Shown here: piece after piece, positions 34,991 to 63,135 of the stretch
Layout: each line of letters begins with the position of its first letter
Numbering within the stretch: position 1 is the stretch's first letter
Origin: Hyalangium minutum
GTDB lineage: Bacteria; Myxococcota; Myxococcia; Myxococcales; Myxococcaceae
DNA: 64,000 nucleotides
Reading direction: 5' to 3'
NCBI RefSeq assembly: GCF_000737315.1
Contig: NZ_JMCB01000022.1
Location: 1 to 64,000 of the forward strand
The notes under the pieces: generated by a model
Told to the model about the DNA's origin: nothing
Seen by the model: the letters and a program-made list of their open reading frames with translations, nothing else
Database searches by the model: none
Program-made: the position numbers and the translations under genes

Positions 34991-35132
34991 GTCTCTCCCC
35001 CGGTGACTCACGGGAAAGATGGGAACCCCAGGCGCTCCTGCCGCTCAGGGGTCAATGCCTGCCCGCCCGGTGAGCAGGGGTCCTATTCCGGCCTCGACTT
35101 TCCTCCCATGGACGATGCGTAGCTTTGCCTGC

Positions 35133-37615: not shown

Positions 37616-40600
37616 ATGATGCGAGTAAAACAACTGCTAGCACCGCTCTTGGTTGTGCTCGTGCTGCAGGCGCAGACCGCCCAGGGGGCGATTGCCGCCG
37701 CGCACGTCTACCACAACCACATGCCCAACTTCTGGCCGTACTACGACGTGACGCGGTACGCCGCGACGCCCGTCGGGAGTCCCATCCGCTACGCGTATGA
37801 CGGCCAGGTCATCAACCTGAAGCAGAGCCCGCCCTCGAACTACACCTACTTCCTGCCATCGGGCGCGCCCATGCCGCACGATGACCTCGTCACCTACTAC
37901 TCGCACAACGCGAAGACGGGCGCGTACCTGTACTGGCCTCCGGCCGTCGCGTCGGACATGAGCTCCAACGCGAACACCGGGCAGGTCCACGTGACCATGT
38001 CCGGCGCCGTGGTGAACAACGTGCAGGATCTCACCACGCTGCAGAACGTGCCGGGTTACAACAACACCTCGTGGGGCACCTCGTGGAGGGACAAGTACAA
38101 CACGCTGCGCACGCCCGCGGGCAACCGGACGCTGGACCTCATCCACTTCACCGGCCACCACTCCATGGGTCCGCTGGTGGGCCCGGACTACTTCCTCAAG
38201 GACCTCATCTACCAGAGCGCCACCCTGGCGCAGCCGTACTTCCTGGGCAGTGATTTCCGCTCGTCCAAGGGCTTCTTCCCCACCGAGCTGGGCTTCTCCG
38301 AGCGCATCATCCCCACGCTGGCGAAGCTCGGCATCCAGTGGTCCGTCATCGGTGACAACCACTTCTCGCGCACCCTCAAGGACTACCCGTTCTTGAATGA
38401 TCCGGGCTCGGACACGCTCGTGTCTCCGCCCAACCGCGCGGATCTTCAGAACACCAGCAACGTGGGAAGTTGGGTCAGCCTGCAGATGGCGCATGAGCAG
38501 CAGACCATCCGCAACAAGTACCCGTTTGCCTCCACGCCGCACTGGGTGCGCTACGTGGACCCGGCCACCGGCACCGAGTCGCGCGTGGTGGGCATCCCCG
38601 TGAACCAGAACGGCTCGTGGGAAGAAGGCTGGGAGGGCCAGGTCACCGTGGGTGTGGTGGGTCTCCAGAACTTCGAGGGTCTGGTGCCGCAGAAGCAGTT
38701 CTTCGTCATCGCCCATGACGGCGACAACTCGGGCGGCCGCGCGGGCTCGGATTCCACCTGGTACAACGGCCGCAGCGTCACCTGCACTGCGGGCGTGCAG
38801 TGCCTGGGCATCAGCGAGTACCTCGTCAGCAACACGCCGGCCACCACGGATGTCGTCCACGTGCAGGATGGCTCGTGGGTGGATACGCGCGACTCCTCGT
38901 CGGATCCGCAGTGGCACCACTGGAAGCTGCCGTTCGGCATCTGGAAGGGCCAGTTCCCCGCGTTCAACTCGGCCACGGGCCTGAACCTCGCTCCGAAGAC
39001 GAACCTCAGCGGCGTCCAGGAGGGGATGACTGTCTCCTTCGAGCACGGGTGGCACTACCTGGAGCGCAACTTCGCTCTGCTCCAGGCCGCCCTCAACTAC
39101 GCCAAGACCGCCGAGCAGATCTGGCTGGATGACCACCCCAACCACTGGCAGCCCACCACCACCGTGGACAACCAGATCACCCACCCGGGCAACCAGCTCA
39201 ACCCGTGGATGATGTCCTTCCCCGTCAAGGGCAACCCCAGCAGCGATTGGGCCGGCGGTGCCAACCCCGCCGAGCTCGCCTGGTACTTCCTGCTGCCCGC
39301 CATGGACTCGGGCTTCGGCTACTACGACGAGAACCAGGACGACAACGTCAAGCCCACGCTGTCCTTCAACCAGTCGCTCTACTTCGCCAAGCCGTATGTG
39401 CAGGACCGCGTCACCCAGGACCGCACCGGCCCGTCCGTGTGGTGGCCGCAGCGCTGGCCCTACAACCCCGGCAGCGCCAACACCGACAAATCCGAGGGCT
39501 GGACGCTCCACCACTTCAACAACACCTTCGCCATCTACACCTACGCCTATGACGTGAGCGGCCTGTACAACATCAAGGTCCGCATCCGCACGCACGCCAA
39601 CAAGAGCATCGACCCACTCGACAACACCCACAAGGTGTATGACCCAGCCGCGCGCAAGGCCGCTGGCGTGCCCAACATCGACACCACCCGCGTGAGCGCC
39701 TGGGTGGACTACCCGATGAACAAGCGCGACCTGAAGCCGGTGATCAACGGCGTCTCCTGGCAGCCCGCCTACCTGCCCGTCATGGCGAAGGTGCCCGCGC
39801 AGGAGATCGGTGACCTCTACTACACGTACCTCGGCAACTACCGCGACCAGCTCATCGACTACTACATCGAGGCCACCGACACGCGGGGCAATGTCACCCG
39901 CAGCGAGATCCAGTCCGTCTACGTCGGCGCGGGCACGTACACCCTCACGGGCGGCAAGTACGTCGAAGACATCAACGGCACCGTCCAGGGCACCCACCCG
40001 TTCCTCGTCGTGGACACCACTGTGCCCTCCGCGCCCACTGGGCTGGCGGCAGCCACCGTGACGGATCGCTCCGTGAAGCTCACGTGGAACGCAGCCTCGG
40101 ACAACGTGGGCGTCACGGGCTACACCGTGTTCCGCGGCGGTACGCAGGCCGGCACGAGCACCTCCACCAGCTACACCGACAGCGGGCTCACCGCGAGCAC
40201 CGCGTACAGCTACACCGTGAAGGCGCGCGATGCTGCGGGCAATCTCTCCGCAGCCAGCGCAACCCTGAACGTCACCACCCAGGCGCCGGACACCACCGCG
40301 CCCTCCGCACCCACGGGGCTGGCGGCCGCGGGCGTGACGAGCTCCTCGGCCACGCTGAGCTGGACGGCCGCCACCGACAACTACGGCGTTGCGGGCTACT
40401 ACGTGTATCGGAATGGGACGCAGATCGCCGCCCCGACTGCAACGAGCTACACGGACAGCAGCCTGTCTCCGAGCACCCCGTACAGCTACACCGTGAAGGC
40501 GGCAGATGCGGCGGGGAACCTCTCGGCGGCCAGCTCGGCCGTGAGCGTCACCACCGGCGCCGGTAACGCCAGCACCGTGTATTACAAGAAGGGCTTCACC

Positions 40601-41971
40601 ACACCGTACCTCCACTACCGCCCGGCGGGTGGCACGTGGACGACTGCGCCCGGCGTCGCCATGCCGGACTCGGAGGTCGCGGGCTACGCGAAATACACCG
40701 TGAACCTGGGCGCAGCCACGCAGCTCGAGGCGGACTTCAACAACGGCAGCGGCACCTGGGACAGCAACAACGGCTCCAACTACTTCTTCGCCACCGGCAC
40801 CTCCACCTTCAACGCGGGCACCATCACCTCGGGCGCCCCTGTGGTCGATACGACGGCCCCCTCCGCTCCTTCCAACCTCGCCTCGCCGTCGAAGACTCCC
40901 AACTCCGTGACGCTCTCGTGGACGGCCTCCACGGATGACTTCGGCGTGACGGGCTACCTCATCTTCCGCGGCAGCACGCAGGTGGGCACGAGCACCTCCA
41001 CCAGCTTCACGGACAACGGGCTGGCCTCGAGCACCACGTACAGCTACACCGTGAAGGCCCGGGATGCCGCAGGCAACACGTCGGCAGCCAGCACAGCGCT
41101 GAGCGTCACCACCAGCTCGGGCAGCTCTGTCACCGTCTATTACAAGAAGGGCTTCACCACCCCGTACATCCACTACCGCCCCGCAGGCGGCACGTGGACG
41201 ACCGCTCCCGGTGTGCTCATGCCGGATGCAGAGGTCGCCGGTTATGCCAAGTACACGGTGAGCCTGGGCTCCGCCACGCAGCTCGAGTGCGACTTCAACA
41301 ACGGCAGCGGCACCTGGGACAACAACGGCGGCCTGAACTACTTCATCCCCGCCGGCATCCAGACCTTCAATGCGGGCACCCTCACCGCGGGCGCTCCGTC
41401 CACGGATGTGTCCTCGCCTGCTGCCCCCACCGGTCTGGCGGTGTCATCCACGACGTCCACCGCCGTCTCGCTCACCTGGAACGCGGTGACCGACCCCAGC
41501 GGCATCGCGGGCTACAACGTGTATCGCGGAGGCACGCTGGTGGGCTCGCCCACCTCGACCAGCTACACCGATACCGGCCTCACGGCGGGCACGGCCTATA
41601 GCTACACCGTGAAGGCGCGGGACACCGTGGGCAACCTCTCGGCTGCCAGCGCCGCCCTGAGCGTCACGACGAGCTCTACCGGCGCCACCGTCACCTTCAA
41701 TGAGACGGCCAGCACCGCGATGGGCCAGAACATCTACGTCGTCGGCAGCATCGCGGCGCTCGGGAGCTGGAGCACGGGCTCGGCCATCCAGCTGTCGCCG
41801 GCCAACTACCCGACGTGGAGCGTGGCGGTGAGCCTGCCCGGCTCGACGGCCTTCGAGTACAAGTACATCAAGAAGGACGGCAGCGGGAACGTCATCTGGG
41901 AGAGCGGCGCCAACCGCGTCTACACCACTCCCTCGACAGGCACCGCGACGCTCAACGATACCTGGAAGTAG
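37616..41971 (+). CDS. Secreted multi-module alpha-amylase-like glycoside hydrolase (GH119/GH57-like) with four FN3, two CBM25-like and one CBM20 modules
   Basis: Signal peptide; HNHMP and FFPTELGFS motifs; FN3 repeats (W...DN.GV.GY.V.R); YYKKGFTTPY.HYRPAGGTW twice; C-terminal CBM20 (GQNIYVVGS, EYKYIKK, WESGANR). Confidence 0.85.
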   Translation: MMRVKQLLAPLLVVLVLQAQTAQGAIAAAHVYHNHMPNFWPYYDVTRYAATPVGSPIRYAYDGQVINLKQSPPSNYTYFLPSGAPMPHDDLVTYYSHNAKTGAYLYWPPAVASDMSSNANTGQVHVTMSGAVVNNVQDLTTLQNVPGYNNTSWGTSWRDKYNTLRTPAGNRTLDLIHFTGHHSMGPLVGPDYFLKDLIYQSATLAQPYFLGSDFRSSKGFFPTELGFSERIIPTLAKLGIQWSVIGDNHFSRTLKDYPFLNDPGSDTLVSPPNRADLQNTSNVGSWVSLQMAHEQQTIRNKYPFASTPHWVRYVDPATGTESRVVGIPVNQNGSWEEGWEGQVTVGVVGLQNFEGLVPQKQFFVIAHDGDNSGGRAGSDSTWYNGRSVTCTAGVQCLGISEYLVSNTPATTDVVHVQDGSWVDTRDSSSDPQWHHWKLPFGIWKGQFPAFNSATGLNLAPKTNLSGVQEGMTVSFEHGWHYLERNFALLQAALNYAKTAEQIWLDDHPNHWQPTTTVDNQITHPGNQLNPWMMSFPVKGNPSSDWAGGANPAELAWYFLLPAMDSGFGYYDENQDDNVKPTLSFNQSLYFAKPYVQDRVTQDRTGPSVWWPQRWPYNPGSANTDKSEGWTLHHFNNTFAIYTYAYDVSGLYNIKVRIRTHANKSIDPLDNTHKVYDPAARKAAGVPNIDTTRVSAWVDYPMNKRDLKPVINGVSWQPAYLPVMAKVPAQEIGDLYYTYLGNYRDQLIDYYIEATDTRGNVTRSEIQSVYVGAGTYTLTGGKYVEDINGTVQGTHPFLVVDTTVPSAPTGLAAATVTDRSVKLTWNAASDNVGVTGYTVFRGGTQAGTSTSTSYTDSGLTASTAYSYTVKARDAAGNLSAASATLNVTTQAPDTTAPSAPTGLAAAGVTSSSATLSWTAATDNYGVAGYYVYRNGTQIAAPTATSYTDSSLSPSTPYSYTVKAADAAGNLSAASSAVSVTTGAGNASTVYYKKGFTTPYLHYRPAGGTWTTAPGVAMPDSEVAGYAKYTVNLGAATQLEADFNNGSGTWDSNNGSNYFFATGTSTFNAGTITSGAPVVDTTAPSAPSNLASPSKTPNSVTLSWTASTDDFGVTGYLIFRGSTQVGTSTSTSFTDNGLASSTTYSYTVKARDAAGNTSAASTALSVTTSSGSSVTVYYKKGFTTPYIHYRPAGGTWTTAPGVLMPDAEVAGYAKYTVSLGSATQLECDFNNGSGTWDNNGGLNYFIPAGIQTFNAGTLTAGAPSTDVSSPAAPTGLAVSSTTSTAVSLTWNAVTDPSGIAGYNVYRGGTLVGSPTSTSYTDTGLTAGTAYSYTVKARDTVGNLSAASAALSVTTSSTGATVTFNETASTAMGQNIYVVGSIAALGSWSTGSAIQLSPANYPTWSVAVSLPGSTAFEYKYIKKDGSGNVIWESGANRVYTTPSTGTATLNDTWK

Positions 41972-49998: not shown

Positions 49999-52146
49999 TC
50001 ACCGCTCCAGGGGCCCGAGCTGCACCTGGAGCACCTGGGCCGTGGGCCAGGGCGGAGTGAACTCGGGGCGCGCGGTGAGCACCGCGCACAGCCGCGCGCC
50101 GGAGGCCTCCTTCACCAGCTGCGCCAGCAGATCCAAGGTGACCGGATCAGCCCAGTGCACGTCCTCCACCACCATCAGCACGGGCTGCCGCTGGGCCATC
50201 TCGAAGAACAGGTCCAGCAGCGCCTGCACGGTCTGCTCCTGCTGGCGCCGCGCGGACATGGCCTGCACCGGATGGTGGACCGAGGCACCCGGAACGGCGA
50301 GGAGCGCGGCGAACAGCGGGAGGAACTCGGCGGTCTCGAAGCCGTACTGGGAGAGCAGCGCCTCGATCGCGGCGGTGGCCTGCTCCGAGGTCGAGTCCTG
50401 GCTCAGCCCCAGCAACCGCTCCAGCAGATCCACCACGGGCCGCAAGGGGCTGTCGCGCCCCTCGGAGGTGCAGCGGCACTCCAGGAAGGTGTGCGGCGTG
50501 TGGCGCGCTTGCAGCACGAGTTCCTGCGCCAGGCGGGACTTGCCGATGCCGGGCTCGCCTCGGATCAGGATGCCCTGCCCCGTGCCGGCCTGCACCTGCC
50601 TCCAGCGCTGCACCAGCAGCTCCAGTTCCAGGGTGCGGCCGAGCAGCGGATTCACGGGTGTCCGCTCCAGGCCCGCCGTGGAGGCACGCTGCCGGCCTCG
50701 GAGGCGGAACACCGGCATGGAGTTCGCCCCCACGCCCACACGGTGCTCTCCCGAAGGTTCGAGGACAAAGCCCTCGCGCAGCACCTGGGCGGTGGCCTCA
50801 CTGACGAGCAACTCTCCGGGCTGAGCGAGCGCCTCCAGCCGCTCCGCCACTCCGGGCGTGTGGCCCACCAGCACGGGCAGCCCCGAGAGGCCCTGCCCTC
50901 GCAGCTCGCGACTGAGGACGGGACCGGTGTGGATGCCGACGCGGACCTCGGCCTTCAGTCCGTGGGCACGTGCCAGCTCCGCACCGCGCTTCTCCATCTG
51001 CGCCATCAGCTCCAGGGCCGTGAAGGCCGCGCGCTGGGCGTCGTCCTCGTGCGCCTTGGGATAGCCGAAGTACAGCAGCACCCGCTCTCCCCAGACGCTG
51101 CCCAGCCAGCCCTCCCGCTTGCGGGCCAGCTCGACCCAGGCGGCGTGCTGCTTCCATAGCAGCGCGTCCAGCTCCTCGGCCTTCGCGGTGGCCGCGCTCC
51201 CGCCCACCAGCCGCAGGCTGCAGCAGACAGCCGTGAGGTGCCGGCGCTCATCCTCGGCGGAGGCCAGGGGCTGCTCCACCAGGACCGGGGACATGGGCGT
51301 CTCCGCCGAGGGCCACCCCTGCGTCGCGCACGACTCCAGCTCCAGCAGCAGGCCCTGCGCGGTGACGTCCCGTGCCTGGGGGTTCTTCTCCGTGGCGCGC
51401 CGCAGCAGCCGGCCGAGGCGATGACTGGAGAGCCACTCGGGCAGGACGACGGGCTCCGGGCCCAGCTGCTTGAAGATGAGGTCCTGCAGCCGGGAGCCCT
51501 CCACCACCCGCCTGCCCGTGAGACACTCCACGAAGATGAGGCCCCACGCGTAGAGGTCCGTACGCGCCGTTACCGGCTCACCCCGGAGTTGCTCGGGCGC
51601 GGCGTAAGCGGGCGTGCCCAGCGTGTCCCGCGTCCGGGTGATGCGTGACAGCTCCTCGCGCCGGTCCTCGTCGGAGAGCGTGCCCAGTCCGAAGTCGAGC
51701 ACCATGGCATTGCGCCGCAGGCCCGTGCTGGTGAGCATGATGTTCTGCGGCTTCAGGTCCCGGTGGACGATGCCCAGCTTGTGCGCGCACCCCAGCGCGT
51801 CCAGCACCTGCAACATGAGATGCGCGGCCTCCCATGGCGGCAGCGCCCCCTCCGTCGCAAGCACGTCTCCTAACGTTCGGCCGGGCACATACTCGAAGAC
51901 GGTGTAGAGCCGCCCGGTCGCTGTCCGCCCGGAGTCGATGAGCCGGACGATGTGCGGGTGATAGAGCCGGGCGCACAGCCGCATCTCGCGCTGAAAGCGG
52001 GCAATGAGCCCCTCGTCCGCCGCATGCAGTGGCTGGAGGATTTTGACGGCCACCTCCTGACCGGTGGCCCGCTGGCGCGCCTTGAAGACCTGGCTGAAGC
52101 CTCCCTCGCCCAGCTTGGAGAGCACCTCGTAGCGCTCCTGGAACAC
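49999..52146 (-). pseudogene. Truncated paralogue of the kinase/cyclase/ATPase fusion
   Basis: Colinear with the first roughly 735 aa of 52229..56263, then stops at QVQLGPLER* one base from the pgi stop. No ATG upstream of GTG 52146 although the frame stays open. Confidence 0.65.
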
Positions 52147-52228: not shown

Positions 52229-55200
52229 TCAGGACCCCCACTCCTCCATCACGGCCCGAGCTCGCTGGAGATCCAACGTGTCGAAGCCTTCCGTGAACTG
52301 TCCATAAAGAGGCATCAACAGCTCACGGGCCTCCGCGTGTTGTCCCTTGCGCAGCAATTGCTTGCACAGCGGTACGGCGGCGCGCAGCTCCACCATCCTC
52401 GCGCTCCGCTCGCGCGCTAGGGCGATGGCCTCTCGCAGCTTGGCTTCGCCCTCATTGGAGTCTGGGTTCTGGGCCAGCAGCGCATTGCCATACCGGTACA
52501 GCACGTGCAGCTGCGAGAATCCCTCCCCGGAGGCCTGGGCCCGGCGCAGCGCCTCCTCAAGCCGCTGGAGCGCCGCCTCATGATGGCCGAGTGAGGACTC
52601 GACCTCGGCCACGATGGAAGCATAACTGGACCAGTAGAGCGCACTGCCATGTTCCTCCAGCAGGGCGAGGATCCGCTGCATCCCTTGCAGATCCCGCGTG
52701 GCCACGCAGCGCAGCAGCTGCGCGTACGCCCCTTGCGACACGAGCCGCTGGCGAGTGGTCAGCTCGACGAGCTCGCTAGAGAGGGTGTCGAGCCGGGCGA
52801 ACTCCAGCCGCAGGTGGTACAGCACCAGGGTGTAGATGCTGGCCACGGCGCGTGTGCTCATGTGATTCAAGTCTCGAGCCCTGGCGAGGGCAGACTCCAT
52901 CACCCTCAAGCCCTCATCCGGAAATCCCAGGTGCCACCGCACGAACCCTAGGGACAGCATTGCCTGGACGCGAGGATCGAGCGCGTACATGGAAGCAGCG
53001 CTGGGAACAGCGTCTTCGCGCAGTGACAAGGCCCGGCCGAGGCATTCTCCCGACTCGACGAACAGTCCCTGGGCACAGAGAGAATCTCCCAGGAGCGGGA
53101 GTGTCACGGCCTGGTGGCTGGCGTGCTGCGTCAGCCCCTCCATGGAAACCAGCCGCTCCGCCAACGCGCGCGCCTGAGTATGTTGGGCACGCAGGTGATG
53201 GTAACTGGCCAGCGCCCACAGCGTTGGGACAACGCGCGGGCTGTCGCCCAGCAGATCGATCAACGCCTGGCTGCGCTCCACGTGTGCTTTGACCGCAGCG
53301 TCGGTCCAGCCCCGAGTCGCCATGAGCGCGGGGGTGATGACTTCGTTGAACTCGAGTTCCACCTTCGCGCGCTCGCGCTCGTCGGAGATAGCACCGAGCC
53401 ACTCCAGCGCCTCCGTGGCGTGGCTCAAGGCTTCGGCATGGGCCGAACGCATGAGGGCCCCCACCGCTGCCTTGAGGGCATACCCCAGCGCCTCGCGCTT
53501 CTGCTCCGCTCCAGCATGGTGGCGAGCCAACACGTCTGGACGTTGCTGGACCAGCTCGGGGAAGCGCTGCTCCAGCGCCGCCGCGATGCGCGCATGCATC
53601 TGCCGGCGCATCTGCTTGGGCATGGCCTCGTAGGCGGTGTCGCGGATGAGGGCATGCTTGAAGGCGTAGCCCGAGCCGCGCGCCCCGCGCCGCCGGTGGA
53701 CGAGATCCGCCACCACCAGAGCCTCCAAGTCCTTCTTCAGCATCGCCTCGTCCGACGCGGAGGCCGCCAGGAGCACCTCGTAGCTGAAATCACGCCCCAG
53801 CGCGGAGGCGAGCTGTGCCGTGGCCTTGGCCACGCCGAGCCGGTCCAGCCGGGCCATCAGTAAGTCGCGCAGGGTGCTCGGAACCTCCAGGCTCCCCACC
53901 TTGCGCGGCGTGTCTCCTTGCCGAGACAGGGACTCCACCACCATCCGGGTCAGCTCCTCGACGAACAGCGGCACCCCATCCGTGCGCTCCAGGATGCGCT
54001 CCACCACCTCAGCGGAAAGCAGGACCCCCTGCGTCAGGCGCTTCACCATCTCCTCCACCTGAGACCGCTCCAGCCGCCCCAGCTGCACCTGGAGCACCTG
54101 GGACGCGGACCCGGGCGGCGTAAACTCGGGACGCGCGGTGAGCAGCGCGCACAGGCGCGCGCCCGAGACGTCCCCCACCAGCTGCCCCAGCAGCTCCAGG
54201 GTCGTCGGGTCGGCCCAGTGGAGGTCTTCCACCAGCAGCAGCACGGGCTGTTGCTGGGCCATCTCGAACAGCAGCCCCAGCAGCGCCTGGAACGTCTCCT
54301 CCTTCTGGCGCTGCGGAGACATGGGCGGCGGCGGATAGCGGCCCGAGGGATCCTTGAGCGACAGCAGCGCGGCGAACAGCGGCAGGAACTCGGCCAGCAC
54401 GAAGCCGTAGCGCAGCAGCAGCGCTTCGAGCGCCGCCACGGCTTGCTCCGGCGTGGAGCCCCGGTCTAGCCCCAGCAGCCGCTCCAGCAGATCCACCACC
54501 GGGCGCAGGGTGCTGTGGCGCCACTCGGGAGAGCACCGGCACTCCAGGAAGGTGTGCGGCACGTCGCGCGCCTGTTGCGCCAGCTCCTGCGCCAGCCGCG
54601 ATTTGCCGATGCCCGGCTCTCCGGTGATGAGGAGGGCCTGCCCCACGCCCGCCACCACCTGCCGCCAGCGCTGCCGCAGCAGCTCCGTCTCCCAGAGGCG
54701 CCCGAACAGCGGTGCCACCTGGCCGTGCGAGGCTGTGCGCAGCTCGGGGCCCAGCTCGAACGACTGCATCGACCAGCTGCCGGCTTGGGCCTCCTGAGCG
54801 GGCATCAGCTCGAAGGCGTCCCTCAGCAGCTTCGCCGTCTGGGTGCTCACGAGGATGGCTCCTGGGCTGGCTCGCTCCGCCAGTCGCGAGGCCACGCTGG
54901 GCACAGGCCCCACCGGGGCGGACGACAAGGCGCTGCTGCCGCCCAGGACACTGGGACTGACCACCAGCCCGGTGTGGATGCCCACGCGTACCTCCAGCGA
55001 GGCCCCGTGCTTCTCCGCCAGCTCCTGGGCCCGCTGCTCCAGTTCCGACACCATCTCCAGTGCCATCCGCGCCGCGCGCCGCGCATCGTCCTCTCGCGCC
55101 GTGGGGTAGCCCATGAACACCACCATCCGCTCCGCCAGCACCCCTCCCACGTGCGCTTCGAGGCGCCGGGCGATCTCCGCGAGCGCCACATACAGGCCTC

Positions 55201-56263
55201 GGTGCAGCTGATCCGCCTCCTCGACGTCCTCGCGCTCCTCCAGCCCCGCCAGCGTCACCCCGATGCAGACAGCGGTCAGCTGGCGGTGCTCCCCATCCGC
55301 CTTCATGATGACCGTCTCGACCAGAGCCTGCCCCGCCCCCATACCGGCCCCCATCTGCGGCGCTCCGCTGCCCCCGCCCTCCCTGGCCCTGGACTCCAGC
55401 TCCTGGATCAGCCCCTGCGCCGTCACCTCACGCGCCTTCGGATCCTTCTGCGTCACCTTGCGCAGCAGCGGGCCCAGCCGGTGCCGCTCCAGCCAGTCCG
55501 GGAAAGGAATTGGATCCGGTCCGAGCTGCTTGTAGAGCACCTCCTGCAGCGTGGCGCCGCTCATGGCCCGCTGACCGGTGAGGCACTCCAGGAACGTGAG
55601 CCCCCAGGCATACAGGTCCGTGCGCTCGGTGACCAACTCGGAGCGCAGTTGCTCGGGCGCGGCATAGGCGGGCGTGCCCAGCACCTCCCGCGAGCGCGTG
55701 AGCGGGGCTGCGCCTCCCATCATGGCCTCCTGCGGCAGCGTGCCCAGCCCGAAGTCGAGCACCAGCGCGTTGCGCCGCACTCCCGTCATCGCCACCATGA
55801 TGTTCTGCGGCTTGAGGTCCCGGTGGATAATGCCCAGCTTGTGTGCGGCCCCCAACGCGTCCAGCACCTGCAGCATCAGGTGCGTGGCCTCCTCGGCTGC
55901 TATCGGCCCCTGGGCCACCACCTCCGCCAGCGAGCGGCCCGGCACGTACTCGAAGACGGAGTAGAGCTGGTTGTCCGCCGTCACTCCCGAGTCGATGAGC
56001 CGGACGATGTGCGGGTGGTAGAGCCGGGCGCATAGCTGCATCTCGCGACGGAAGCGGGCCACATGGTGCTCGTCCTCCAAGTGCGCGGTCTTCAGCAGCT
56101 TGATGGCCACATCTTGATTCGTGGAGCGGTGCCGGGCCCGGTAGACCTGACCGAAGCCGCCCTCGCCCAGCGGGGAGAGAATCTCGTAGCGCTCCTGGAA
56201 CACCGTCCCTGCAGCAATCGATGCCACCGCGGCCCTCCTTAGGAGGCCGCGATTCAATCCCAC
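52229..56263 (-). CDS. Ser/Thr kinase - cyclase-like - STAND ATPase - TPR fusion (TOMM kinase/cyclase fusion family)
   Basis: HRDLKPQN, DFG, GEPGIGKS Walker A, LLVEDLHWAD Walker B, TDGVPLFVEEL, FKHALIRDTAY; 1344 aa. Confidence 0.9.
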   Translation of the reverse strand: MGLNRGLLRRAAVASIAAGTVFQERYEILSPLGEGGFGQVYRARHRSTNQDVAIKLLKTAHLEDEHHVARFRREMQLCARLYHPHIVRLIDSGVTADNQLYSVFEYVPGRSLAEVVAQGPIAAEEATHLMLQVLDALGAAHKLGIIHRDLKPQNIMVAMTGVRRNALVLDFGLGTLPQEAMMGGAAPLTRSREVLGTPAYAAPEQLRSELVTERTDLYAWGLTFLECLTGQRAMSGATLQEVLYKQLGPDPIPFPDWLERHRLGPLLRKVTQKDPKAREVTAQGLIQELESRAREGGGSGAPQMGAGMGAGQALVETVIMKADGEHRQLTAVCIGVTLAGLEEREDVEEADQLHRGLYVALAEIARRLEAHVGGVLAERMVVFMGYPTAREDDARRAARMALEMVSELEQRAQELAEKHGASLEVRVGIHTGLVVSPSVLGGSSALSSAPVGPVPSVASRLAERASPGAILVSTQTAKLLRDAFELMPAQEAQAGSWSMQSFELGPELRTASHGQVAPLFGRLWETELLRQRWRQVVAGVGQALLITGEPGIGKSRLAQELAQQARDVPHTFLECRCSPEWRHSTLRPVVDLLERLLGLDRGSTPEQAVAALEALLLRYGFVLAEFLPLFAALLSLKDPSGRYPPPPMSPQRQKEETFQALLGLLFEMAQQQPVLLLVEDLHWADPTTLELLGQLVGDVSGARLCALLTARPEFTPPGSASQVLQVQLGRLERSQVEEMVKRLTQGVLLSAEVVERILERTDGVPLFVEELTRMVVESLSRQGDTPRKVGSLEVPSTLRDLLMARLDRLGVAKATAQLASALGRDFSYEVLLAASASDEAMLKKDLEALVVADLVHRRRGARGSGYAFKHALIRDTAYEAMPKQMRRQMHARIAAALEQRFPELVQQRPDVLARHHAGAEQKREALGYALKAAVGALMRSAHAEALSHATEALEWLGAISDERERAKVELEFNEVITPALMATRGWTDAAVKAHVERSQALIDLLGDSPRVVPTLWALASYHHLRAQHTQARALAERLVSMEGLTQHASHQAVTLPLLGDSLCAQGLFVESGECLGRALSLREDAVPSAASMYALDPRVQAMLSLGFVRWHLGFPDEGLRVMESALARARDLNHMSTRAVASIYTLVLYHLRLEFARLDTLSSELVELTTRQRLVSQGAYAQLLRCVATRDLQGMQRILALLEEHGSALYWSSYASIVAEVESSLGHHEAALQRLEEALRRAQASGEGFSQLHVLYRYGNALLAQNPDSNEGEAKLREAIALARERSARMVELRAAVPLCKQLLRKGQHAEARELLMPLYGQFTEGFDTLDLQRARAVMEEWGS

Positions 56264-56282: not shown

Positions 56283-57287
56283 TCAGTGCCGGGGCGGCGC
56301 CTGGAAGACGCGCAGCAGCAGCACGAGCGAGGGCACCACGGTCACCAGGCCCACGGCCAGCGCCACCATCAGCACGCGCAACACTCCGGGACTGGCCGCT
56401 GCGGACTGGACGGTGAGGTCCGGCACCACGAGGTACGGGTACTGTGACACGGCCCACCCCAGCACGATGAACCCCGCCTGCGCCGCCGCCGTCACACGGG
56501 CCAGCCGGAAGCGCCTGCGCCACAGCAGCGCGAACGTGGTCACCGCCGTCACCGCTGTGACTCCGTGCAACGCCAGCGCGGAGGGCGCGTGCAGCAGGCC
56601 CTCCCAGACACGGGAGGCTCCGTCCCTCGCGAACAGCAGCACGCCCAGCGCCGCGAGAAAGACCGCCACCCCCGAGGCCAGCGCCCGGCGCCGGAAGTCC
56701 TCGCGCAGCGGATCCGTGGTGGCCTCCGCCGTCAGGTACACGGCCGCGAGAAAGGCAAAGAGGCACAGCGCCAGCACGCCCACCGCCACGGCGAACGGCG
56801 TCAGCCACGAAGCGAAGAAGCCGCTCACCACCGCCCGGCCCTCCACGCGGATCTGCCCGCTCACCACCGCTCCCACGCACATGCCGAGCAGCAGCGGAGA
56901 GATGACACTGGCAATGCTGAACACCAGTCCCCAGCGCTTCTGCACCCGGTCTCCTCGCGCGTCGTAGGTGCGGAAGGTGAACGCGGTGCCCCGGAAGACA
57001 ATGCCGAGCAGCAGCAGCGTCAACGGGACATGCAGCGCCACGGTGAGCGCCGCGAAGGCCCGAGGGAAACCGCCGAACAGCAGCACGAGCCCTACGATGA
57101 GCCAGACATGGTTCACCTCCCACACCGGGCCCAGCGCCTTGGCGATGAGCTCGCGCTGCTCCGCCTTGCGAGGCCCTGCGGCGAGCAGGTCCCACACCCC
57201 GCCGCCGAAGTCCGCTCCGCCGAAGAGCGAGTAAAGGACGAATGTCCCCGCCACCGCCCCCGCGAGGATGAGCTCAGTGGGCATCAT
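56283..57287 (-). CDS. cydB: Cytochrome bd ubiquinol oxidase subunit II
   Basis: GADFGGGVW, PVWEVNHVWL, LLGIVFRG; many TM helices. Confidence 0.92.
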   Translation of the reverse strand: MMPTELILAGAVAGTFVLYSLFGGADFGGGVWDLLAAGPRKAEQRELIAKALGPVWEVNHVWLIVGLVLLFGGFPRAFAALTVALHVPLTLLLLGIVFRGTAFTFRTYDARGDRVQKRWGLVFSIASVISPLLLGMCVGAVVSGQIRVEGRAVVSGFFASWLTPFAVAVGVLALCLFAFLAAVYLTAEATTDPLREDFRRRALASGVAVFLAALGVLLFARDGASRVWEGLLHAPSALALHGVTAVTAVTTFALLWRRRFRLARVTAAAQAGFIVLGWAVSQYPYLVVPDLTVQSAAASPGVLRVLMVALAVGLVTVVPSLVLLLRVFQAPPRH

Positions 57288-58593
57288 CCGCCTCCCGGCC
57301 CGGCAGCGTCCCAGCCACCTGGCGCGCGAGCAGGAACGTCACCACCACGCCCAGGAAGAGGTACACGAGCGTGAAGGTCCAGAACGGCGCGGCCAGGTGT
57401 GGCACCGGCGTCACCGCCTCGGCCGTGCGCATCACCCCGTGGAGGATCCATGGCTGCCGTCCCCACTCGGTGACGAGCCAGCCCGCCTCCAGCGCCAGCA
57501 GCCCCAGCGGCGACGCCCACAGCCATGCCCGCATCATCCACCGGCTCGCAGGCCACTCGCGCTTGCGCCAGCGCAGCAGCAGCGTCACCACGGACAACAG
57601 GGCCATCGCGCTGCCCGCCCCCACCATCACCTGGAAGGACACGTGCACCTTCGCCACCGGAGGCCAGTCCTCTCGGGGGAACTCCTTCAAGCCCCTCACC
57701 TCGGCGTCCGGATCTCCGAACGCCAGGATGGACAGCCCCTTGGGGATATCCAACGCGTACGGCGTGGTGGCCGTCTCCACATCCGGCAGCCCGCCCAGCC
57801 GCAGCGGTGCACCCCGCTCCGTGTCGAAGTGTCCTTCCATCGCAGCCAGCTTCACCGGCTGCTCCTTCGCGGTGTGCTTCGCCAGGAAGTCTCCCACCAG
57901 CGGCTGCAGGAGCGCGGTGAGGCATGCCACCGGCAGCGCCACCGACAGCGCCTTGCGGTGGAACCCCGAGCCCGGGTGCTTGAGCAGCACGAAGGCGTGG
58001 ATGCCCGCCATCGCGAAGGCGCTCGCTTGGTAGCACGAGATGAGCACGTGGACCGTCTGGTACTTCCACCCCGAGCTGAACATCGCCGCCAGCGGCTCGA
58101 TGTTCATCGGCCCCACCGCTGTGGGCGTGAAGCCGGAAGGGTCGTTCATGAAGACGTTGACCAGCGTGACGAAGAAGGCGCTCGCCGCGCCGCTCAGCGC
58201 CACCATCACTCCCGAGAACAGGTGGAGCCCCGGAGATACCCGCTCCCGTCCATACAGGTAGATGCCCAGAAAGATGGCCTCGGTGAAGAAGGCCACGCCC
58301 TCCAATGCGAAGGGCAGCCCAATCACTTCACCGTATTGCCCCATGAACTCGGGCCAGAGCAGGCCCAGCTCGAACGAGAGCACCGTGCCGCTCACCGCCC
58401 CGACCGCGAACAGGATGGCCGTGCCCTTGGCCAACTTCTGGCTCAAAAGCCGGTAGTCCGCGTCGCCCGTGCGCCGCGCCTTCCAGTCGCTGATCACCAT
58501 CAGCACCGGCAGCGCCACCCCCGCGGCGGCGAAGACGATGTGGAACGCCAGCGACAGCCCCATCTGGGCCCGCGCATAGAGCAGATCCGTCAC
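57274..58593 (-). CDS. cydA: Cytochrome bd ubiquinol oxidase subunit I (short Q-loop)
   Basis: ARAQM...FHIVF, GTVLSFELG, EGVAFFTE, QPVKLAAMEG and GWLVTEWGRQPW. Confidence 0.93.
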   Translation of the reverse strand: MTDLLYARAQMGLSLAFHIVFAAAGVALPVLMVISDWKARRTGDADYRLLSQKLAKGTAILFAVGAVSGTVLSFELGLLWPEFMGQYGEVIGLPFALEGVAFFTEAIFLGIYLYGRERVSPGLHLFSGVMVALSGAASAFFVTLVNVFMNDPSGFTPTAVGPMNIEPLAAMFSSGWKYQTVHVLISCYQASAFAMAGIHAFVLLKHPGSGFHRKALSVALPVACLTALLQPLVGDFLAKHTAKEQPVKLAAMEGHFDTERGAPLRLGGLPDVETATTPYALDIPKGLSILAFGDPDAEVRGLKEFPREDWPPVAKVHVSFQVMVGAGSAMALLSVVTLLLRWRKREWPASRWMMRAWLWASPLGLLALEAGWLVTEWGRQPWILHGVMRTAEAVTPVPHLAAPFWTFTLVYLFLGVVVTFLLARQVAGTLPGREADDAH

Positions 58594-58638: not shown

Positions 58639-59103
58639 CTACTGAGCCTTCTGAGGCTCGGTGCGGTTTCTGGGCACGAGCGACTGGACCGAGTTCTTCG
58701 CGATGTTCGTGGCCAGCGCGGTGGCGAAGATGAGGATGAGCTTGCGGCCCAGTTCCACCGGCAGCGGCCGCTCCTCGGCGGAGGAGGCCACGCGGTCCGG
58801 GTGCTGCCACGCCCGCTCCAGGGCCTTCAGCCGGTGCCGCGCGAGGATCTGCTCGCGGTGGCGCGCACGCCAGATGGCCACGCCCACGCCGATGCCCGTC
58901 AGCACCGCCGCGGTGATGGCCACGCCGACAAGCAGGTCCTGGTGCCGCGTGGCCTGGTAGCGCACGTCCAGCACCCGCTCCCGGCGCCGCTCCAGTTCCT
59001 CCAGCGTCAGCAGCAGCTCGTCGCGGATGCGATCCGCCGTGCGCTCGACCTGCTCGCGGTCGCTCAGGCCCTTGGTGATGTGCGTCTTGTCCCCGGCGTT
59101 CAT
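58639..59103 (-). CDS. Hypothetical membrane-anchored protein (DUF3618/YqjK-like)
   Basis: Start reassigned to ATG 59103 overlapping the upstream stop; QVERTADRIRDELLLTLEEL coiled coil plus one TM. Confidence 0.65.
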   Translation of the reverse strand: MNAGDKTHITKGLSDREQVERTADRIRDELLLTLEELERRRERVLDVRYQATRHQDLLVGVAITAAVLTGIGVGVAIWRARHREQILARHRLKALERAWQHPDRVASSAEERPLPVELGRKLILIFATALATNIAKNSVQSLVPRNRTEPQKAQ

Positions 59104-59504
59104 TGCAGACTCTCCCGTGCCAGGTCGAAGTCCGCCTTGAGACGCTCCTGGGTGTGAGGCAGCGGCTTCTTGGGCAGCCGCTTCACCCCGAACCAGCCCA
59201 GCCCGCCCGCGATGAGCAGGACGGCCACCCCCACCAGCAGCACCCCGAGCCACGAGCTCAGCGGCAGCGCCAGACCGATGGCCACGAAGAGGGCCGCCAG
59301 GCCACACAGGGCCAGCGTGAAGCCCACGCCCAGCAAGATGCCGCTGGTGCGCGCGGCCTTCACCTCGTCGCGCAGCTCCTTCTTGGCGTGCAGCAGCTCC
59401 GCTTTGACGAGCAGCTTCGTCTCGGCGAGGGCATGCCGGACCAGCTCGGCGGTACTCAGGGTCTCCAGTTGGCTTCGCTCCAGCCGCTCCGATTCGAGTT
59501 CCAC
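59100..59504 (-). CDS. Phage-holin-family (holin-X/YqjE-like) membrane protein
   Basis: GTG 59504 with GGAGG RBS; ELVRHALAETKLLVKAELLHAKKEL, two TM helices, LPHTQERLKAD. Confidence 0.8.
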   Translation of the reverse strand: MELESERLERSQLETLSTAELVRHALAETKLLVKAELLHAKKELRDEVKAARTSGILLGVGFTLALCGLAALFVAIGLALPLSSWLGVLLVGVAVLLIAGGLGWFGVKRLPKKPLPHTQERLKADFDLARESLQ

Positions 59505-59690
59505 GTCTCCGCCTCCGGACTCCAGAGGCCCGGGCGTGCGCCTCGCACGCACCCGCTGCCCCTGCTCTGGCTGAAGGTGGGCAGGGGTCTTCCTGCGGTG
59601 AAGTTCCTCCGTGGATGCGAACCCCTGTCCGCCTGCCTGCCCTCCGGCTAGCAGGGGAAATCCCCCGGCTTTCGTCCAGGAAGCAGCGCG

Positions 59691-62279
59691 TCAGGGCGGA
59701 GGCGGCGTGGCCGAGACGGGAGGAGCCACCTCCGCCAGGGCAGCCTCGAGGGACTCTCCGCCTCGAACCACCCGCGCCAGCCGGCCCGAGGCGTCGTAGA
59801 GCAGCACCGTGGGGAGGGCAAGCTGGCCGCCAGGAGAGAGCGGATCCGCCACCTCGGGCATCAGCGCCGCCACCGGGTAGCCGATGCCCATCTTCGTGGC
59901 CTCGGCCTGGGCCTGCTCAGGCGGGTGGGCCGCCAAGCCGCGCACCTGCCACCGGCCTTCTTGCGCCAGCTTGCTCAGGACGGGCACCTCCTTGAGGCAG
60001 GGCTTGCACCACGAGGCGAACAGCTGCACCGCAGTGGGCCGGCCATCCTTCGTGCCGCCCGCCTGCTCCAGGCTCAGGGGCAGCTTGGGCACGGGCGCGC
60101 GAGGCGGGCGGGCCGCGAACGCGGTGGAGTCCTTGGCTCCGCCCTCCGTGAGTGCCCACCGGCGGCCTGCCTGAAGCGCCCCGAAGGACTCGGTCACGCC
60201 CGGCCGCCACGTCACCTCGACTTCGGCCTGCGTCTCCGTCCCGAGCCCCACGTGGATGGTGGGGTCCACCGAGCTCACATACCCGCGCGTCAGCAGCACG
60301 GGGAACGCCCGGAGGCCCGCGGCCGTCTTCACCTTCACCGTGGCCGTGCTCGCCTCGGGGTCTCCCTTCGTGGCGCGCAGCCGCAGCTCCATGGAGTTAC
60401 CGGGGACGCCCTCATTCACGAAGAGCTGCAAGCGCGGCTTGGCGCGGTTGAGCATGAGCAGCTCCTGGTGCCCATCCCCATCGAGGTCCTGCGCCACCAG
60501 GGCCCGGCCATCCGCGCGGGACTCGAAGCCGTCCGAGAAGGCGCACTCCTCGAAGGTGCCATCCTCCCGCTGCAGCCAGAGCTTCTTGGGCTCCCAGCCG
60601 GAGAAGGACTGCTCGAAGCCCGTCTGCCCCACCTTCTTCAGTGGCGAGGGCCCCACGGACTGCACCGACGCGTACGGAGCCGTCGCGACCGCCGGGTTAT
60701 TGCGGCCGATGGACTTCTTTTCGAGTGCGAGCGCCAGGACCTGGCGCCAGTAGACACTTCAAAGGTCTTTTCGATTGGGCGCGCTGTAGAAGCCATTCGC
60801 GACGGCGAGGTCCAACCTCCCATCGTCGTCCGCGTCGAGGAAGATGGCGCCAAAGGCCCACAAGCCCCGGTTGACGCCTCGGGCGCGGGCCACCTCGTCG
60901 AAGCCGCCGTCCGCACGCGCCAGGTAGAGCGTGTTGCCGGCGGCGAACTTGTCCAGCCGGGCCTTCAGCTTGGGGTCCACCTGGGTGGCGGCCAGCACGC
61001 GGGTGCCCGCCTTGGAGAACATGTTGGCGACATAGAGGTCCAACCGGCCATCGCCGTTCACGTCGCCCACGTCGGCGCTCATACCGTTGCCGGGGTCCCT
61101 CAGACCGTGCGCGTCCGTCACGTCCCGAGGTGTTCCACCCTCCTCGAAGCGCCACAGGTCGTTGTCGCCAAAGTCGTTGGCCACGTAGATCTGCGGCCGG
61201 CCCTCTCCAAGCAGATCCCCCGCGACGGCCGCGAGTCCCCAGCGCCGGTGCAGCTCGGCCTTGGGCGGCGACACTTCTTGGAAGGTGAAGTCTCCCATGC
61301 CCCGGAAGAAGCGAGCCGGACGCCCATCCCGCGCATCGAGGAAGTTGTCCGGGCCGAACTTCATCGGGTAGTGCAGGAGCACCAGGTCGAGCTTGCCGTC
61401 CCCATCGAAGTCCGTGACGAGCGAGGCGTGCGAGTTGGCAGGCGGGAGCTTCGTGGGAATCGCGGTGAAGGTCCCCGCGTCGTTGCGGAGCACCACGGGC
61501 ACCGAGTCCGCGTTCCACGCCGTCTGGGTGGTGGCGATGACGTCCGGGTCGCCATCCGCGTCGAAGTCCCCCGCGGCCAGCGAGGAGAACCAGGCGCCCT
61601 TGGGCGGCGCCACGCTCAAGCGCGTGCGCTCGTAGTGGAGCGGCTCCTTGCCACGGAACAGGTAGAGGGCGCGAGGGTCCGCGAACAGGACCTCCTGGAT
61701 GCCATCTCCATTGAAGTCGCGCACCGCGAGGGCGCCGCTGTTCATCGCCGCCTGCATGCCCGCGGCCTCACCGTCGGCCTCGGCCGGGACCACCAGCCCC
61801 GCGCTCTCCGCGCGCTCGACGAAGCGAGGCTCGGGCCGGATGGACTCGGTCCTCCAGGCGGGCTCGACCTTCTCCAGCCTCCAGGCATCCGCGCGGGGAC
61901 GGCTCAGGGTGGCGGCCGCCTCGCCTCGGATGGACTGGCGCGCACCCTCCCGGTTCACCCCATCCAGCTCGAAGAGGAGACGGATGGTGGCGCTCTGAGC
62001 GGTGGGCTCGAAGGCGAGCGCACGCACGCTGCACCCGGAGATCCACACGAACGTCTCGGTGGGGAGCTGCACGCCGGGCGCGGCCACCTCCTCCGAGAAA
62101 GAGAAGCGGCCCTGCTTGATGGGGGTGCACAGCCGGGTGTCGAAGAACGACTCCAGTGAGTCCTGCAGCGCCTCGCGTGTGTCCAGCTGGTGGATCACCT
62201 TGTACGAGCCCCGCTCCGAAGCACCGGAAGCAGGCGACACGGTGAGACTCAACAGGGCTACCAGTCCGAAGGACTTCAT
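59691..62279 (-). CDS. Candidate selenoprotein (862 aa, Sec507): signal peptide, FG-GAP/VCBS propeller, ASPIC/UnbV domain, TlpA-like redoxin
   Basis: ORFs 60759..62279 and 59691..60665 are in the same frame, separated by TGA plus 31 sense codons. DFNGDG/DFDADG/DVNGDG repeats; SFSGWE, RGYVSS, WCKPC; SECIS-like hairpin after the TGA. Confidence 0.75.
60731..60761 (-). other. In-frame UGA plus bacterial SECIS-like stem-loop
   Basis: Minus strand: TGA AGTGTCTACTG GCGCCAG-GTC-CTGGCGC; 11-nt spacer, 7-bp stem, G-first loop. Confidence 0.75.
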
Positions 62280-62322
62280 CTAAGAGTGAACCCTAGCACA
62301 CTTCCGCTCTATCCTTGGATCC

Positions 62323-63135
62323 ATGAGCGACCCCAGGCGTCTTCTGCCCGTATGGCTGGTTGCGGGACTGCTGGCCGTTGGAGTGCTGCCGCGTCCCGCC
62401 GATGCACAAGGAGCACGAAGCAAGTTCGAGCGTCACCTCACCGCGGCAGCCCGGCTCTACGAAGCCCTGGAGTACGAGCGCGCCCTCACGCAGATCGAGC
62501 TCGCGCGCAAGCAGCCGCACAGCTCGGATCAAGAGGTGGAGCTGTCCCTCTACGAGGGCATCATCCTCGCCGAGTCCGGCAAGCAGGAGTCCAGCACCGC
62601 CGCGTTCAAGTCGGCGCTCCTCGTGCAGCCGGACGCGAAGCTGCCCGTGAAGGTCTCTCCGAAGGTGAACACCTTCTTCGAGTCCGTCCGCGAACAGGTG
62701 AAGCGCGAGCTGGCCGCCTTGGCTCCCAAGGAGCCGCCCAAGGCCGAGCCGCCGCCACCGCAACCCGTGGCCGCGCCCCCTGCAGCCGTGGCCACCCAGA
62801 GCCCCGTGCTGAAGGGTCTGCGCAGCGCCGCGCCCGTCACCGCCATCGCTGGGGGCACCCTGTTCGTGGCGGGTGGAATCACCTACGCGCTCTCTCGGAG
62901 CGAGCTGGGGCGCCTGCGCGACAATGACGCGGCCCTCGACAGCCAGGAGGCCGTGGACAAGACGGTGTCGAAGGGCCGCACCTTGCAGACGGTGGGCGTG
63001 GGGCTCGCGGTCGCAGGCACCGCGGGGCTGCTCGCCGCGGCGGGAGGCTTCCTGCTGGGCTCGCCAGAAGCGCCCGTGGCGGTGGGGCTGGGGACGGACG
63101 GGACATCCGCATTCGTGTTCGGGAGGTGGCCATGA
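62323..63135 (+). CDS. Exported TPR-like protein with Pro linker and C-terminal hydrophobic segments
   Basis: Signal peptide; [15 protein letters not shown]..., [21 protein letters not shown]; common myxobacterial architecture. Confidence 0.7.

Follow-up and report, generated by a model that had tools for sequence, protein, structure and literature searches.

The 64,000-nucleotide (nt) stretch of Hyalangium minutum DSM 14724 DNA analyzed here, hereafter the window, carries on its minus strand two annotated open reading frames (ORFs) that are almost certainly one gene encoding one secreted protein of 862 residues, joined through an in-frame UGA codon at 60761..60759. We put the probability that this codon is decoded as selenocysteine (Sec) at roughly 0.85. 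A sequence-only reading of the window had arrived at the same decoding, and comparative analysis now supports it on three counts: the TGA is conserved among homologous genes, cysteine takes its place in homologues without an interruption, and a hairpin immediately 3' of the codon, a candidate bacterial Sec insertion sequence (SECIS), is conserved along with it.

The locus is carried in GCA_000737315.1 (contig JMCB01000022.1) as two genes, at 62279..60759 and 60665..59691. The upstream FG-GAP ORF comprises 506 codons from an ATG at 62279 to the TGA at 60761..60759, with ...VANGFYSAPNRKDL as its last stretch before that codon and a 3' end that reads ...NGFYSAPNRKDL-TGA. Beyond the TGA, the same frame reads SVYWRQVLALALEKKSIGRNNPAVATAPYAS, enters the ORF called from GTG 60665 and stays open for 355 more codons, down to the stop at 59691. 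The GTG chosen by the gene caller as a second start lies 32 codons past the TGA and is preceded by no Shine-Dalgarno-like sequence or other ribosome-binding site (RBS), and G or C is the third base in 26 of the 31 intervening codons. Read-through translation yields 862 amino acids (aa), with the UGA at position 507. The sequence-only reading had described the ORF end, the position of the TGA, the in-frame continuation, the G/C-ending codons, the missing RBS and the 862-aa product with residue 507 at the UGA, and re-reading and translating the sequence bore it out on every one of these points. A scan of positions 59300-62700 for promoters and terminators found nothing.

Conservation of the UGA codon and its replacement by cysteine

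When the read-through sequence was used as a protein query, about 89 homologues of the N-terminal half were recovered at 41-91% identity, all of which end at the same aligned position, in ...RKDL or ...RKDS or, among the more distant ones, in ...DDA or ...GDA. DNA was fetched for 80 related loci, on contigs from one genome per species (L numbers below; P numbers denote proteins). A TGA occupies the Sec codon in 33/33 myxobacterial loci (38-79% identity), in 10 loci from Verrucomicrobiota, Planctomycetota, another Myxococcota lineage and unclassified metagenome-assembled genomes (MAGs), and in two further Rokubacteria-type loci, one of them from a Rokubacteria MAG. The resulting set of 46 TGA sequences consists of H. 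minutum, the 33 myxobacterial loci and 12 from other phyla. The reading frame is the same in all 46, and neither TAA nor TAG is ever found at this position. The terminal stops of the same myxobacterial genes, taken as a control, do vary (23 TGA, 6 TAG and 4 TAA). The codons right after the TGA encode a conserved S-x-[YFW]-W-R-Q-V-[LV]-A peptide, and tblastn with the C-terminal part as query produced alignments starting from its first residue in 33/33 myxobacterial loci. A TGA private to this strain, which would have spoken against the sequence-only reading, is therefore not what these 33 myxobacterial and 12 other loci show.

Two of the MAG loci lose the frame further downstream. In L036 (~4940) a second in-frame TGA lies 34 codons past the Sec codon and is followed by seemingly out-of-frame sequence, and in L083 (~3950) stops are met ~150 codons after the Sec codon; these losses are assembly errors or decayed copies.

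Uninterrupted homologues join both halves in one chain, and it is here that the identity of the residue aligned with the UGA, a check proposed in the sequence-only reading, becomes informative. Cysteine occupies the Sec position in 16 Bryobacterales loci, in the context KDL-C-SFFWR[RQ]VV (L038, L039, L041, L044, L047, L051, L052, L055, L056, L065, L070-L073, L076 and L078), and also in P0093 (gene L086), where codon 575 is TGT, one substitution away from TGA. P0093 is the closest uninterrupted homologue of the TGA forms, being 51-56% identical to the TGA-bearing P0098, P0115 and P0120. Exchange of Sec and Cys at one position is a classical selenoprotein signature. The Bryobacterales Cys forms, which are probably one clade, have a second Cys in a GWNC motif ~26 residues downstream (16/16). 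In the 19 homologues whose Sec position is occupied by a residue other than Cys or Gly, the site of this second Cys is A, T or E; two Gly forms retain GWNC. This pattern suggests that the GWNC Cys may be a resolving cysteine.

A hairpin with the geometry of a bacterial SECIS

Between the UGA and the hairpin GCGCCAG-GUC-CUGGCGC lies the 11-nt spacer AGUGUCUACUG; spacer and stem-loop are exactly those reported in the sequence-only reading. Encoded by the codons of W-R-Q-V-L-A-L, the hairpin starts 10-11 nt past the UGA and places its apical loop 17-18 nt past it. The bacterial SECIS (bSECIS) model specifies an apical loop of 3-9 nt, a stem of 4-16 base pairs (bp), a G in the first two loop positions, 16-37 nt from the UGA to the loop and a minimum free energy (MFE) of -7.5 kcal/mol or lower (PMC13188914). 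The element falls within these bounds on every count, with a loop of GUC, GGUCG or GGUC (3-5 nt), a stem of 7-8 bp, a spacing of 17-18 nt and, in H. minutum, an energy of -12.9 to -13.4 kcal/mol.

Folding 24 nt from the Trp codon across the fetched loci revealed a hairpin of -8 kcal/mol or lower in 42/43 Sec loci (mean -11.8), versus 4/16 Cys and 8/21 other homologues (Sec versus non-Sec, Mann-Whitney p = 2e-11, uncorrected for phylogeny). Whether the hairpin persists in TGA-containing homologues had been put forward as a further check; it does, with compensatory substitutions and with greater stability than in the non-Sec forms. The lower stem that the sequence-only reading had also drawn fared less well. 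It is predicted in H. minutum and its closest relatives L001 and L002, and its AGUG/CACU part is also readable in L004, but it is not kept further out; we therefore rejected it as a conserved part of the SECIS, and it is probably not essential.

A scan of the locus against Rfam detected neither a SECIS nor any other family. We know of no general bacterial SECIS model in Rfam, so this empty result weighs little. A covariance model built on the UGA and the hairpin gave 39-73 bits for every one of the main-type TGA loci and up to 48 bits for Cys homologues, and missed the planctomycete type. It was rejected as a discriminator of Sec and Cys forms, which it fails to separate because it mostly scores conserved coding sequence.

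Selection on the hairpin and on the codons around the UGA

Since the hairpin sequence also encodes a conserved peptide, we examined selection beyond that on the protein. The hairpin codons are invariant among 34 myxobacterial genes (CGC 34/34, CAG 33/33, GTC 34/34 and GCG 34/34), whereas the background use of these codons in the same genes is 61%, 93%, 36% and 48%, respectively; for invariant residues just upstream of the hairpin, between two and five different codons are in use. When synonymous entropy was computed for 228 conserved degenerate columns, the lowest five-column value of the gene fell at residues 510-516, at 0.13 bit versus a mean of 0.90.

In the other phyla the sequence of the stem varies and pairing is kept, as in GGCGCAC-GGUC-GUGCGCU (encoding WRTVVR), GGCGCGC-GGUC-GUGCGCU, GGCGGCAG-GUC-CUGCCGC (WRQVLP), CGGCGC-GUG-GCGCCG and the planctomycete-type UGGCUGU-CGUGUC-ACAGCCG. 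Some of these compensatory changes alter the amino acid while pairing persists. In an ungapped alignment, three pairs carry double changes, a result matched by 1/500 shuffles. The model-based alignment opened no 1-nt loop gap for the 4-nt GGUC loops of L057, L074, L075 and L080, and these four loci were scored as unpaired in the covariation count although perfect hairpins form in them. The hairpin is under RNA-level selection, beyond the protein code.

A second conserved feature lies outside the hairpin: a context of rare, A/U-ending codons that runs from five codons upstream of the UGA to one codon downstream. CGA is used in 27/30 sequences (background 4.5%), AAA in 24/25 (7.2%) and AAT in 20/25 (10.6%), and the codon preceding the UGA is CTT or TTA in 22/22 (background 2.1% and 0.04%). 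The Ser directly following the UGA is always encoded by AGY, never by TCN. Ribosome pausing, an RF2 context or maintenance of an unstructured zone are candidate roles for this context.

Points against selenocysteine decoding and alternative explanations

Several observations weigh against the decoding of this UGA as Sec. There is no tRNA or sel gene within the 64-kb window, and a search of 43 fetched loci for tRNA-Sec or sel genes likewise found none. The 76-nt fold around the site is not unusual for G+C-rich sequence (z = -1.19); a single-sequence fold says little in such DNA, and the case is decided by comparative evidence. The covariation rests on ~10 sequences from other phyla, there being none inside the myxobacterial clade because the sequence is invariant there. 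The hairpin also forms in the Cys or Met homologues L038, L076, L035, L067 and P0093, the last of which retains CGCCAA-GUG-UUGGCG at the SECIS position (-10.9 kcal/mol) with a compensated G-C to A-U pair, so that the hairpin is necessary-looking, yet shared beyond the Sec forms. This distribution suggests that the WRQV[LV]A codons predispose to a hairpin and that Sec and Cys may have switched recently, for instance in P0093. More distant homologues carry M, E, H, T, N, G, A or S at the Sec position, and with so many homologues devoid of a redox residue, such a residue is not universally required in the wider family. Lastly, the AlphaFold model of the isolated C-terminal fragment is not reliable over its first 57 residues.

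The Sec trait itself is recorded in relatives of H. minutum. Peng et al. (2016; PMC5029168 Table S2) list as Sec users Cystobacter fuscus and Stigmatella aurantiaca (one selenoprotein each), Myxococcus xanthus (two), Corallococcus coralloides (three) and Haliangium (three), and SelA is recorded in C. fuscus and C. coralloides (Mariotti et al., 2015; PMC4561486 supplement). The presence of the trait in related genera is family-level support, not proof for H. minutum DSM 14724.

Three other explanations of the in-frame TGA were considered. The hairpin and the A/U-rich context might favor read-through independently of SelB, through near-cognate insertion of Trp, Cys or Arg, or they might set a regulated ratio between a truncated, propeller-only product and the full-length protein. 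Such read-through could account for the hairpin in some Cys and Met homologues, where perhaps no SelB site is involved, and for the conserved rare-codon context, which is outside any described bSECIS and could affect termination efficiency. We nevertheless consider it unlikely, for the sense-codon homologues nearest to the TGA forms carry Cys specifically, the hairpin geometry and GGUC loop match SelB-dependent elements and the Sec trait is present in relatives of the same family; nor do we know of any programmed UGA read-through conserved across four phyla in bacteria. Less probable still, and in our view a poor account of the locus, is a TGA that acts as a true terminator, with the propeller protein ending there and an internal start, GTG 60665 for example, giving rise to a separate UnbV_ASPIC-thioredoxin protein. 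Gene callers and the NCBI and JGI annotations do give two genes wherever checked, and TGA is the commonest stop in these G+C-rich genomes. Against this stand the most conserved peptide of the linker, which directly follows the TGA and precedes all candidate starts, the variation between genomes in where the second half is called to start (giving 287-354 aa), the lack of an RBS or a conserved start, the existence of single-chain homologues, and the constant frame in 46 sequences with never a TAA or TAG.

A pseudogene, or a sequencing error in this assembly, would be the routine explanation of a lone in-frame stop in a draft genome, such stops often being errors or recent nonsense mutations, and the later frame disruptions in L036 and L083 could be read in the same way. 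The comparative data refute this explanation: the same TGA codon, flanked on both sides by intact frames, recurs in 45 independent genomes and metagenomes that belong to several phyla, and purifying selection downstream is strong, encompassing a CxxC motif invariant in 56 sequences.

Domain architecture of the read-through protein

The coordinates of the gene, its RNA elements and the domains of its product are collected in Table 1. A probable signal peptide of the Sec export type makes the 862-aa protein probably extracytoplasmic, and lipobox-like N-termini are present in the homologues L036, L057, L075 and L080. The FG-GAP_3 and FG-GAP repeats span residues ~188-500 and, like the UnbV_ASPIC match, exceed the Pfam cut-offs; a propeller followed by UnbV_ASPIC is the domain order of the CRTAC1/ASPIC-UnbV family. 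The C-terminal 120 residues match thioredoxin-fold proteins of known structure, namely 3or5 (1e-6), the PilB N-terminal domain 2h30, ResA 4nmu and TlpA 1jfu. The NCBIfam DsbE and TlpA matches are weak and all below cut-off (27 bits versus 123 for DsbE), and this domain is a thioredoxin fold of the general TlpA/ResA/DsbE type and not a member of those NCBIfam equivalogs. Both Cys residues of its CKPC motif are invariant across 56 C-terminal halves. An AlphaFold model of the C-terminal 355 aa shows the thioredoxin domain with a predicted local distance difference test score (pLDDT) mostly at or above 90, a beta-alpha-beta pattern and a helix starting at CKPC.

The surroundings of the Sec position are best approached through the AlphaFold model of the Cys homologue P0093 (806 aa; pLDDT 88, predicted template modelling score 0.91), whose best Foldseek match is the crystal structure of murine CRTAC1 (9etn_A, E = 6e-28, template modelling score 0.74). 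In this model Cys575, which aligns with the Sec, is predicted to sit at the N-terminus of a helix (574-589) directly past the last propeller blade, a place where reactive thiols and selenols are typically found. The same model gave short Foldseek matches (~150-190 columns) to NTF2-like folds, among them LinA and ketosteroid isomerase; judging by the secondary structure of the model, we place these matches in the N-terminal region of P0093. By transfer from this model, the N-terminal domain of the H. minutum protein is probably NTF2/SnoaL-like.

Table 1. Features of the proposed selenoprotein gene of H. minutum (window coordinates)
Feature	Position	Strand	Basis or remark
Single recoded coding sequence, 862 codons, Sec507, stop TGA 59691-59693	59691..62279	-	Frame analysis and homology
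Signal peptide, Sec export type, probable (MKSFGLVALLSLTVSPASGAS)	62217..62279	-	Predicted by reading the sequence
N-terminal domain, residues ~25-150	61830..62207	-	C51 and C83 invariant among myxobacterial homologues
FG-GAP/VCBS beta-propeller with DxDxDG calcium-type loops	60780..61718	-	Pfam FG-GAP_3 4.1e-39, FG-GAP 9.3e-22
Rare-codon context AAT CGA AAA GAC CTT TGA AGT	60756..60776	-	Synonymous-level conservation, H. minutum and L001-L033
In-frame UGA, proposed Sec codon (Sec507)	60759..60761	-	TGA in 46/46 sequences of this type
bSECIS upper stem-loop GGCGCCAG-GUC-CUGGCGCU	60730..60748	-	One more G-U pair; -12.9 kcal/mol
Lower stem, 3' strand GCACUCG, optional	60722..60728	-	Pairs with UGA.AGUG (60754-60761) in the MFE fold
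UnbV_ASPIC domain, residues 646-708	60156..60344	-	Pfam PF07593 7.2e-11
Thioredoxin-fold domain, TlpA/ResA/DsbE type, C-terminal 120 residues	59727..60086	-	PDB sequence matches
CKPC redox motif (WCKPC), C758 and C761, N-terminus of first thioredoxin helix	59997..60008	-	

A possible decoding and redox mechanism

Under Sec decoding, the mRNA hairpin GGCGCCAG-GUC-CUGGCGCU would act as a bacterial SECIS and recruit the SelB-GTP-Sec-tRNA(Sec) complex to the UGA. The product would comprise, in order, the signal peptide, a small N-terminal domain, the FG-GAP beta-propeller, Sec507, UnbV_ASPIC and the TlpA-like thioredoxin domain with CKPC, with Sec507 placed at the start of the helix inserted past the last propeller blade. 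In such an exported enzyme Sec507 would most likely be the redox-active catalytic residue, serving as a nucleophile. Its oxidized selenium, present as a selenenic acid or as a selenenylsulfide with the substrate, could then be resolved by the fused CxxC domain, which a membrane electron donor of the DsbD/CcdA type would in turn keep reduced. The partnership between Sec507 and the CxxC domain is a hypothesis that draws on analogy with known fusions.

The distribution of cysteines among the Sec forms is compatible with this scheme. A CxxC thioredoxin-like domain (W/E-C-x-x-C) co-occurs with Sec in the Myxococcota forms, in the verrucomicrobial L057 and L075, and in L074, L079, L080 and L084; the motif follows the Sec by ~250-270 residues in L057, L075, L079, L080, L074 and three myxobacterial loci. 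The planctomycete-type Sec forms (L034, L046, L066 and L069) have no C-terminal CxxC domain, but they carry a U-x-C motif within G-U-x-C-[VLI]-W (GUNCVW, GUACLW and GUPCIW). Together, the fused CxxC domain, the U-x-C motif and the second Cys of the Cys forms point to redox chemistry. Among these loci, L034 is binned as Alcaligenaceae and closely resembles the Gemmataceae locus L046; it is possibly mis-binned.

As a tentative proposal, to which we would give slightly less than even odds, the H. minutum gene may be the first representative of a so far undescribed family of exported selenoenzymes that spans several phyla, in which a Sec at the N-terminus of an inserted helix is the catalytic center and is recycled by a fused TlpA-like CxxC domain, by the Cys of U-x-C or by the Cys of GWNC. 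The family so conceived would extend, with the same reserve, over Myxococcota, Verrucomicrobiota, Planctomycetota and Rokubacteria-type lineages. If the proposal is true, a large selenoprotein has been overlooked in aerobic soil bacteria to which only 1-3 are attributed, and redox enzymes make up one branch of the ASPIC/UnbV/CRTAC1 superfamily, whose functions are obscure.

Genomic neighborhood

Directly downstream of the gene, on the same strand, lies a Phage_holin_3_6 (holin-X-like) membrane protein gene (59103-59552), followed by the cytochrome bd oxidase subunits I and II (cydAB; 57277-58593 and 56286-57287, minus strand). Next to these are two adjacent paralogues combining Ser/Thr kinase, adenylate/guanylate cyclase and AAA_16 domains (50002-52146 and 52232-56263, minus strand; 715 and 1344 aa), the larger of which has extra TPR repeats. 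This neighborhood of holin-X-like, cydAB and Ser/Thr kinase genes was rejected as an operon clue, as it was not found beside homologous loci. A second thioredoxin-like protein (Thioredoxin_7/Thioredoxin and TPR, 451 aa) is encoded at 18002-19354 (minus strand), in a sequence context unrelated to the Sec gene. Elsewhere in the window, a 584-aa ORF at 33260-35011 (minus strand) matches the two Pfam domains of lipase maturation factor (LMF1 2.4e-50 and LMF1_C 9.5e-48), a family best known from eukaryotes. A 1451-aa protein encoded at 37616-41968 (plus strand) combines two CBM_25 domains, a CBM_20 domain of the starch-binding kind and four fn3 domains; it is probably an enzyme that is secreted and acts on starch or glycans.

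Novelty and implications

A 2026 review (PMC13188914 Table 1) catalogues 119 prokaryotic selenoprotein families and subfamilies, among which there is no FG-GAP, UnbV_ASPIC or CRTAC1-like entry. NCBIfam release 20 holds no selenoprotein model or naming model for the read-through protein, which obtained only sub-threshold thioredoxin-type matches, and full-text literature yielded nothing relevant linking selenoproteins or selenocysteine with FG-GAP, VCBS, ASPIC, UnbV or CRTAC1. Within the searchable literature, the family is thus very probably undescribed, as the sequence-only reading had suspected and as its absence from the catalogue and from NCBIfam supports. The recoding mechanism would be the ordinary bacterial one, and the novelty accordingly lies in the protein family: a large multi-domain selenoprotein, apparently extracytoplasmic and present in several phyla, with its Sec outside any UxxC/CxxU motif.

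The gene is split in every annotation record checked. The C-terminal halves stand as separate database entries with differing starts (287-354 aa), under names such as 'ASPIC/UnbV domain-containing protein' (NCBI) and 'thiol-disulfide isomerase/thioredoxin' (JGI), and the N-terminal half is named 'FG-GAP repeat protein'. Routine splitting by annotation pipelines had likewise been anticipated, and with ~89 N-terminal homologues cut at this point and their C-terminal halves listed separately, this is indeed what is seen. A family model allowing U at this position would repair ~90 split protein clusters, and probably more.

The family would be a well-supported addition to the ~119 catalogued, in aerobic soil phyla with few known selenoproteins; for Archangiaceae and Myxococcaceae the numbers on record are 1-3 each. 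A first concrete and testable hint of a redox active site in a bacterial branch of the CRTAC1/ASPIC/UnbV superfamily comes from the Sec/Cys position together with the co-varying second Cys and the fused CxxC domain. In addition, the overlap of the SECIS with WRQV[LV]A, and its retention in the nearest Cys homologue (TGT), bear on how Sec and Cys may interconvert.

Comparison with known systems

The closest parallel for the RNA element is the Escherichia coli fdhF SECIS, for which the fetched sequence reads UGA, CACGGCCCAUC (11 nt) and GGUUGCAGGUCUGCACC. Both elements lie inside the coding region directly 3' of the UGA and consist of 11 nt followed by a G+C-rich stem-loop of 17-19 nt with GGUC at its apex, and in the family described here the position of the hairpin is fixed across homologues. 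Unlike fdhF, the H. minutum element has no bulged U, brings GGUC 1 nt closer to the UGA, has a loop of 3-5 nt and has an unconserved lower stem. The 11-nt spacing and the GGUC that the sequence-only reading compared with fdhF are both present, GGUC being shifted by 1 nt, and the element is a candidate for the fdhF type. The products are unrelated, the H. minutum protein being no molybdopterin enzyme and its Sec apparently no metal ligand.

Selenoproteins with a TlpA/redoxin-type domain, predicted to be extracytoplasmic redox proteins, resemble the present protein in that domain and in having been predicted through a Sec/Cys pair and a bSECIS. In those proteins, Sec replaces a Cys of a UxxC/CxxU motif inside the thioredoxin fold, whereas the H. 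minutum protein has an ordinary CKPC in its thioredoxin domain and carries the proposed Sec ~250 residues upstream, in the helix inserted between propeller and UnbV_ASPIC.

With the CRTAC1/ASPIC/UnbV proteins, represented by murine CRTAC1 (9etn), it shares an FG-GAP propeller followed by UnbV_ASPIC, with a profile match of 1.8e-66. Mouse CRTAC1 and most bacterial 'CRTAC1 family' proteins are, however, without the helix insert that bears Sec or Cys (...DL-[U/C]-S-x-F-W-R-Q-V...), and they have neither the fused thioredoxin domain nor the N-terminal NTF2-like domain. A link between the Sec feature and vertebrate CRTAC1 was rejected on this ground, the insert being absent from mouse CRTAC1 in the profile alignment; the Sec helix is thus a feature of a bacterial subfamily, from which nothing follows directly for CRTAC1 of vertebrates. 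To our knowledge, CRTAC1 has not been linked to any redox chemistry.

Neisseria PilB (MsrA/MsrB; PDB 2h30, 2fy6 and 2jzr) has a fused N-terminal TlpA-like thioredoxin domain that is among the closest solved relatives of the C-terminal domain described here. In PilB this domain is fused to extracytoplasmic catalytic domains, which it recycles, and PilB serves as the working analogy for a dedicated reductant fused to a catalytic Cys or Sec. The H. minutum protein differs from it in domain order, in its unrelated catalytic module and in having no Msr domain, and the partnership of Sec507 with CKPC would be its counterpart of the PilB arrangement.

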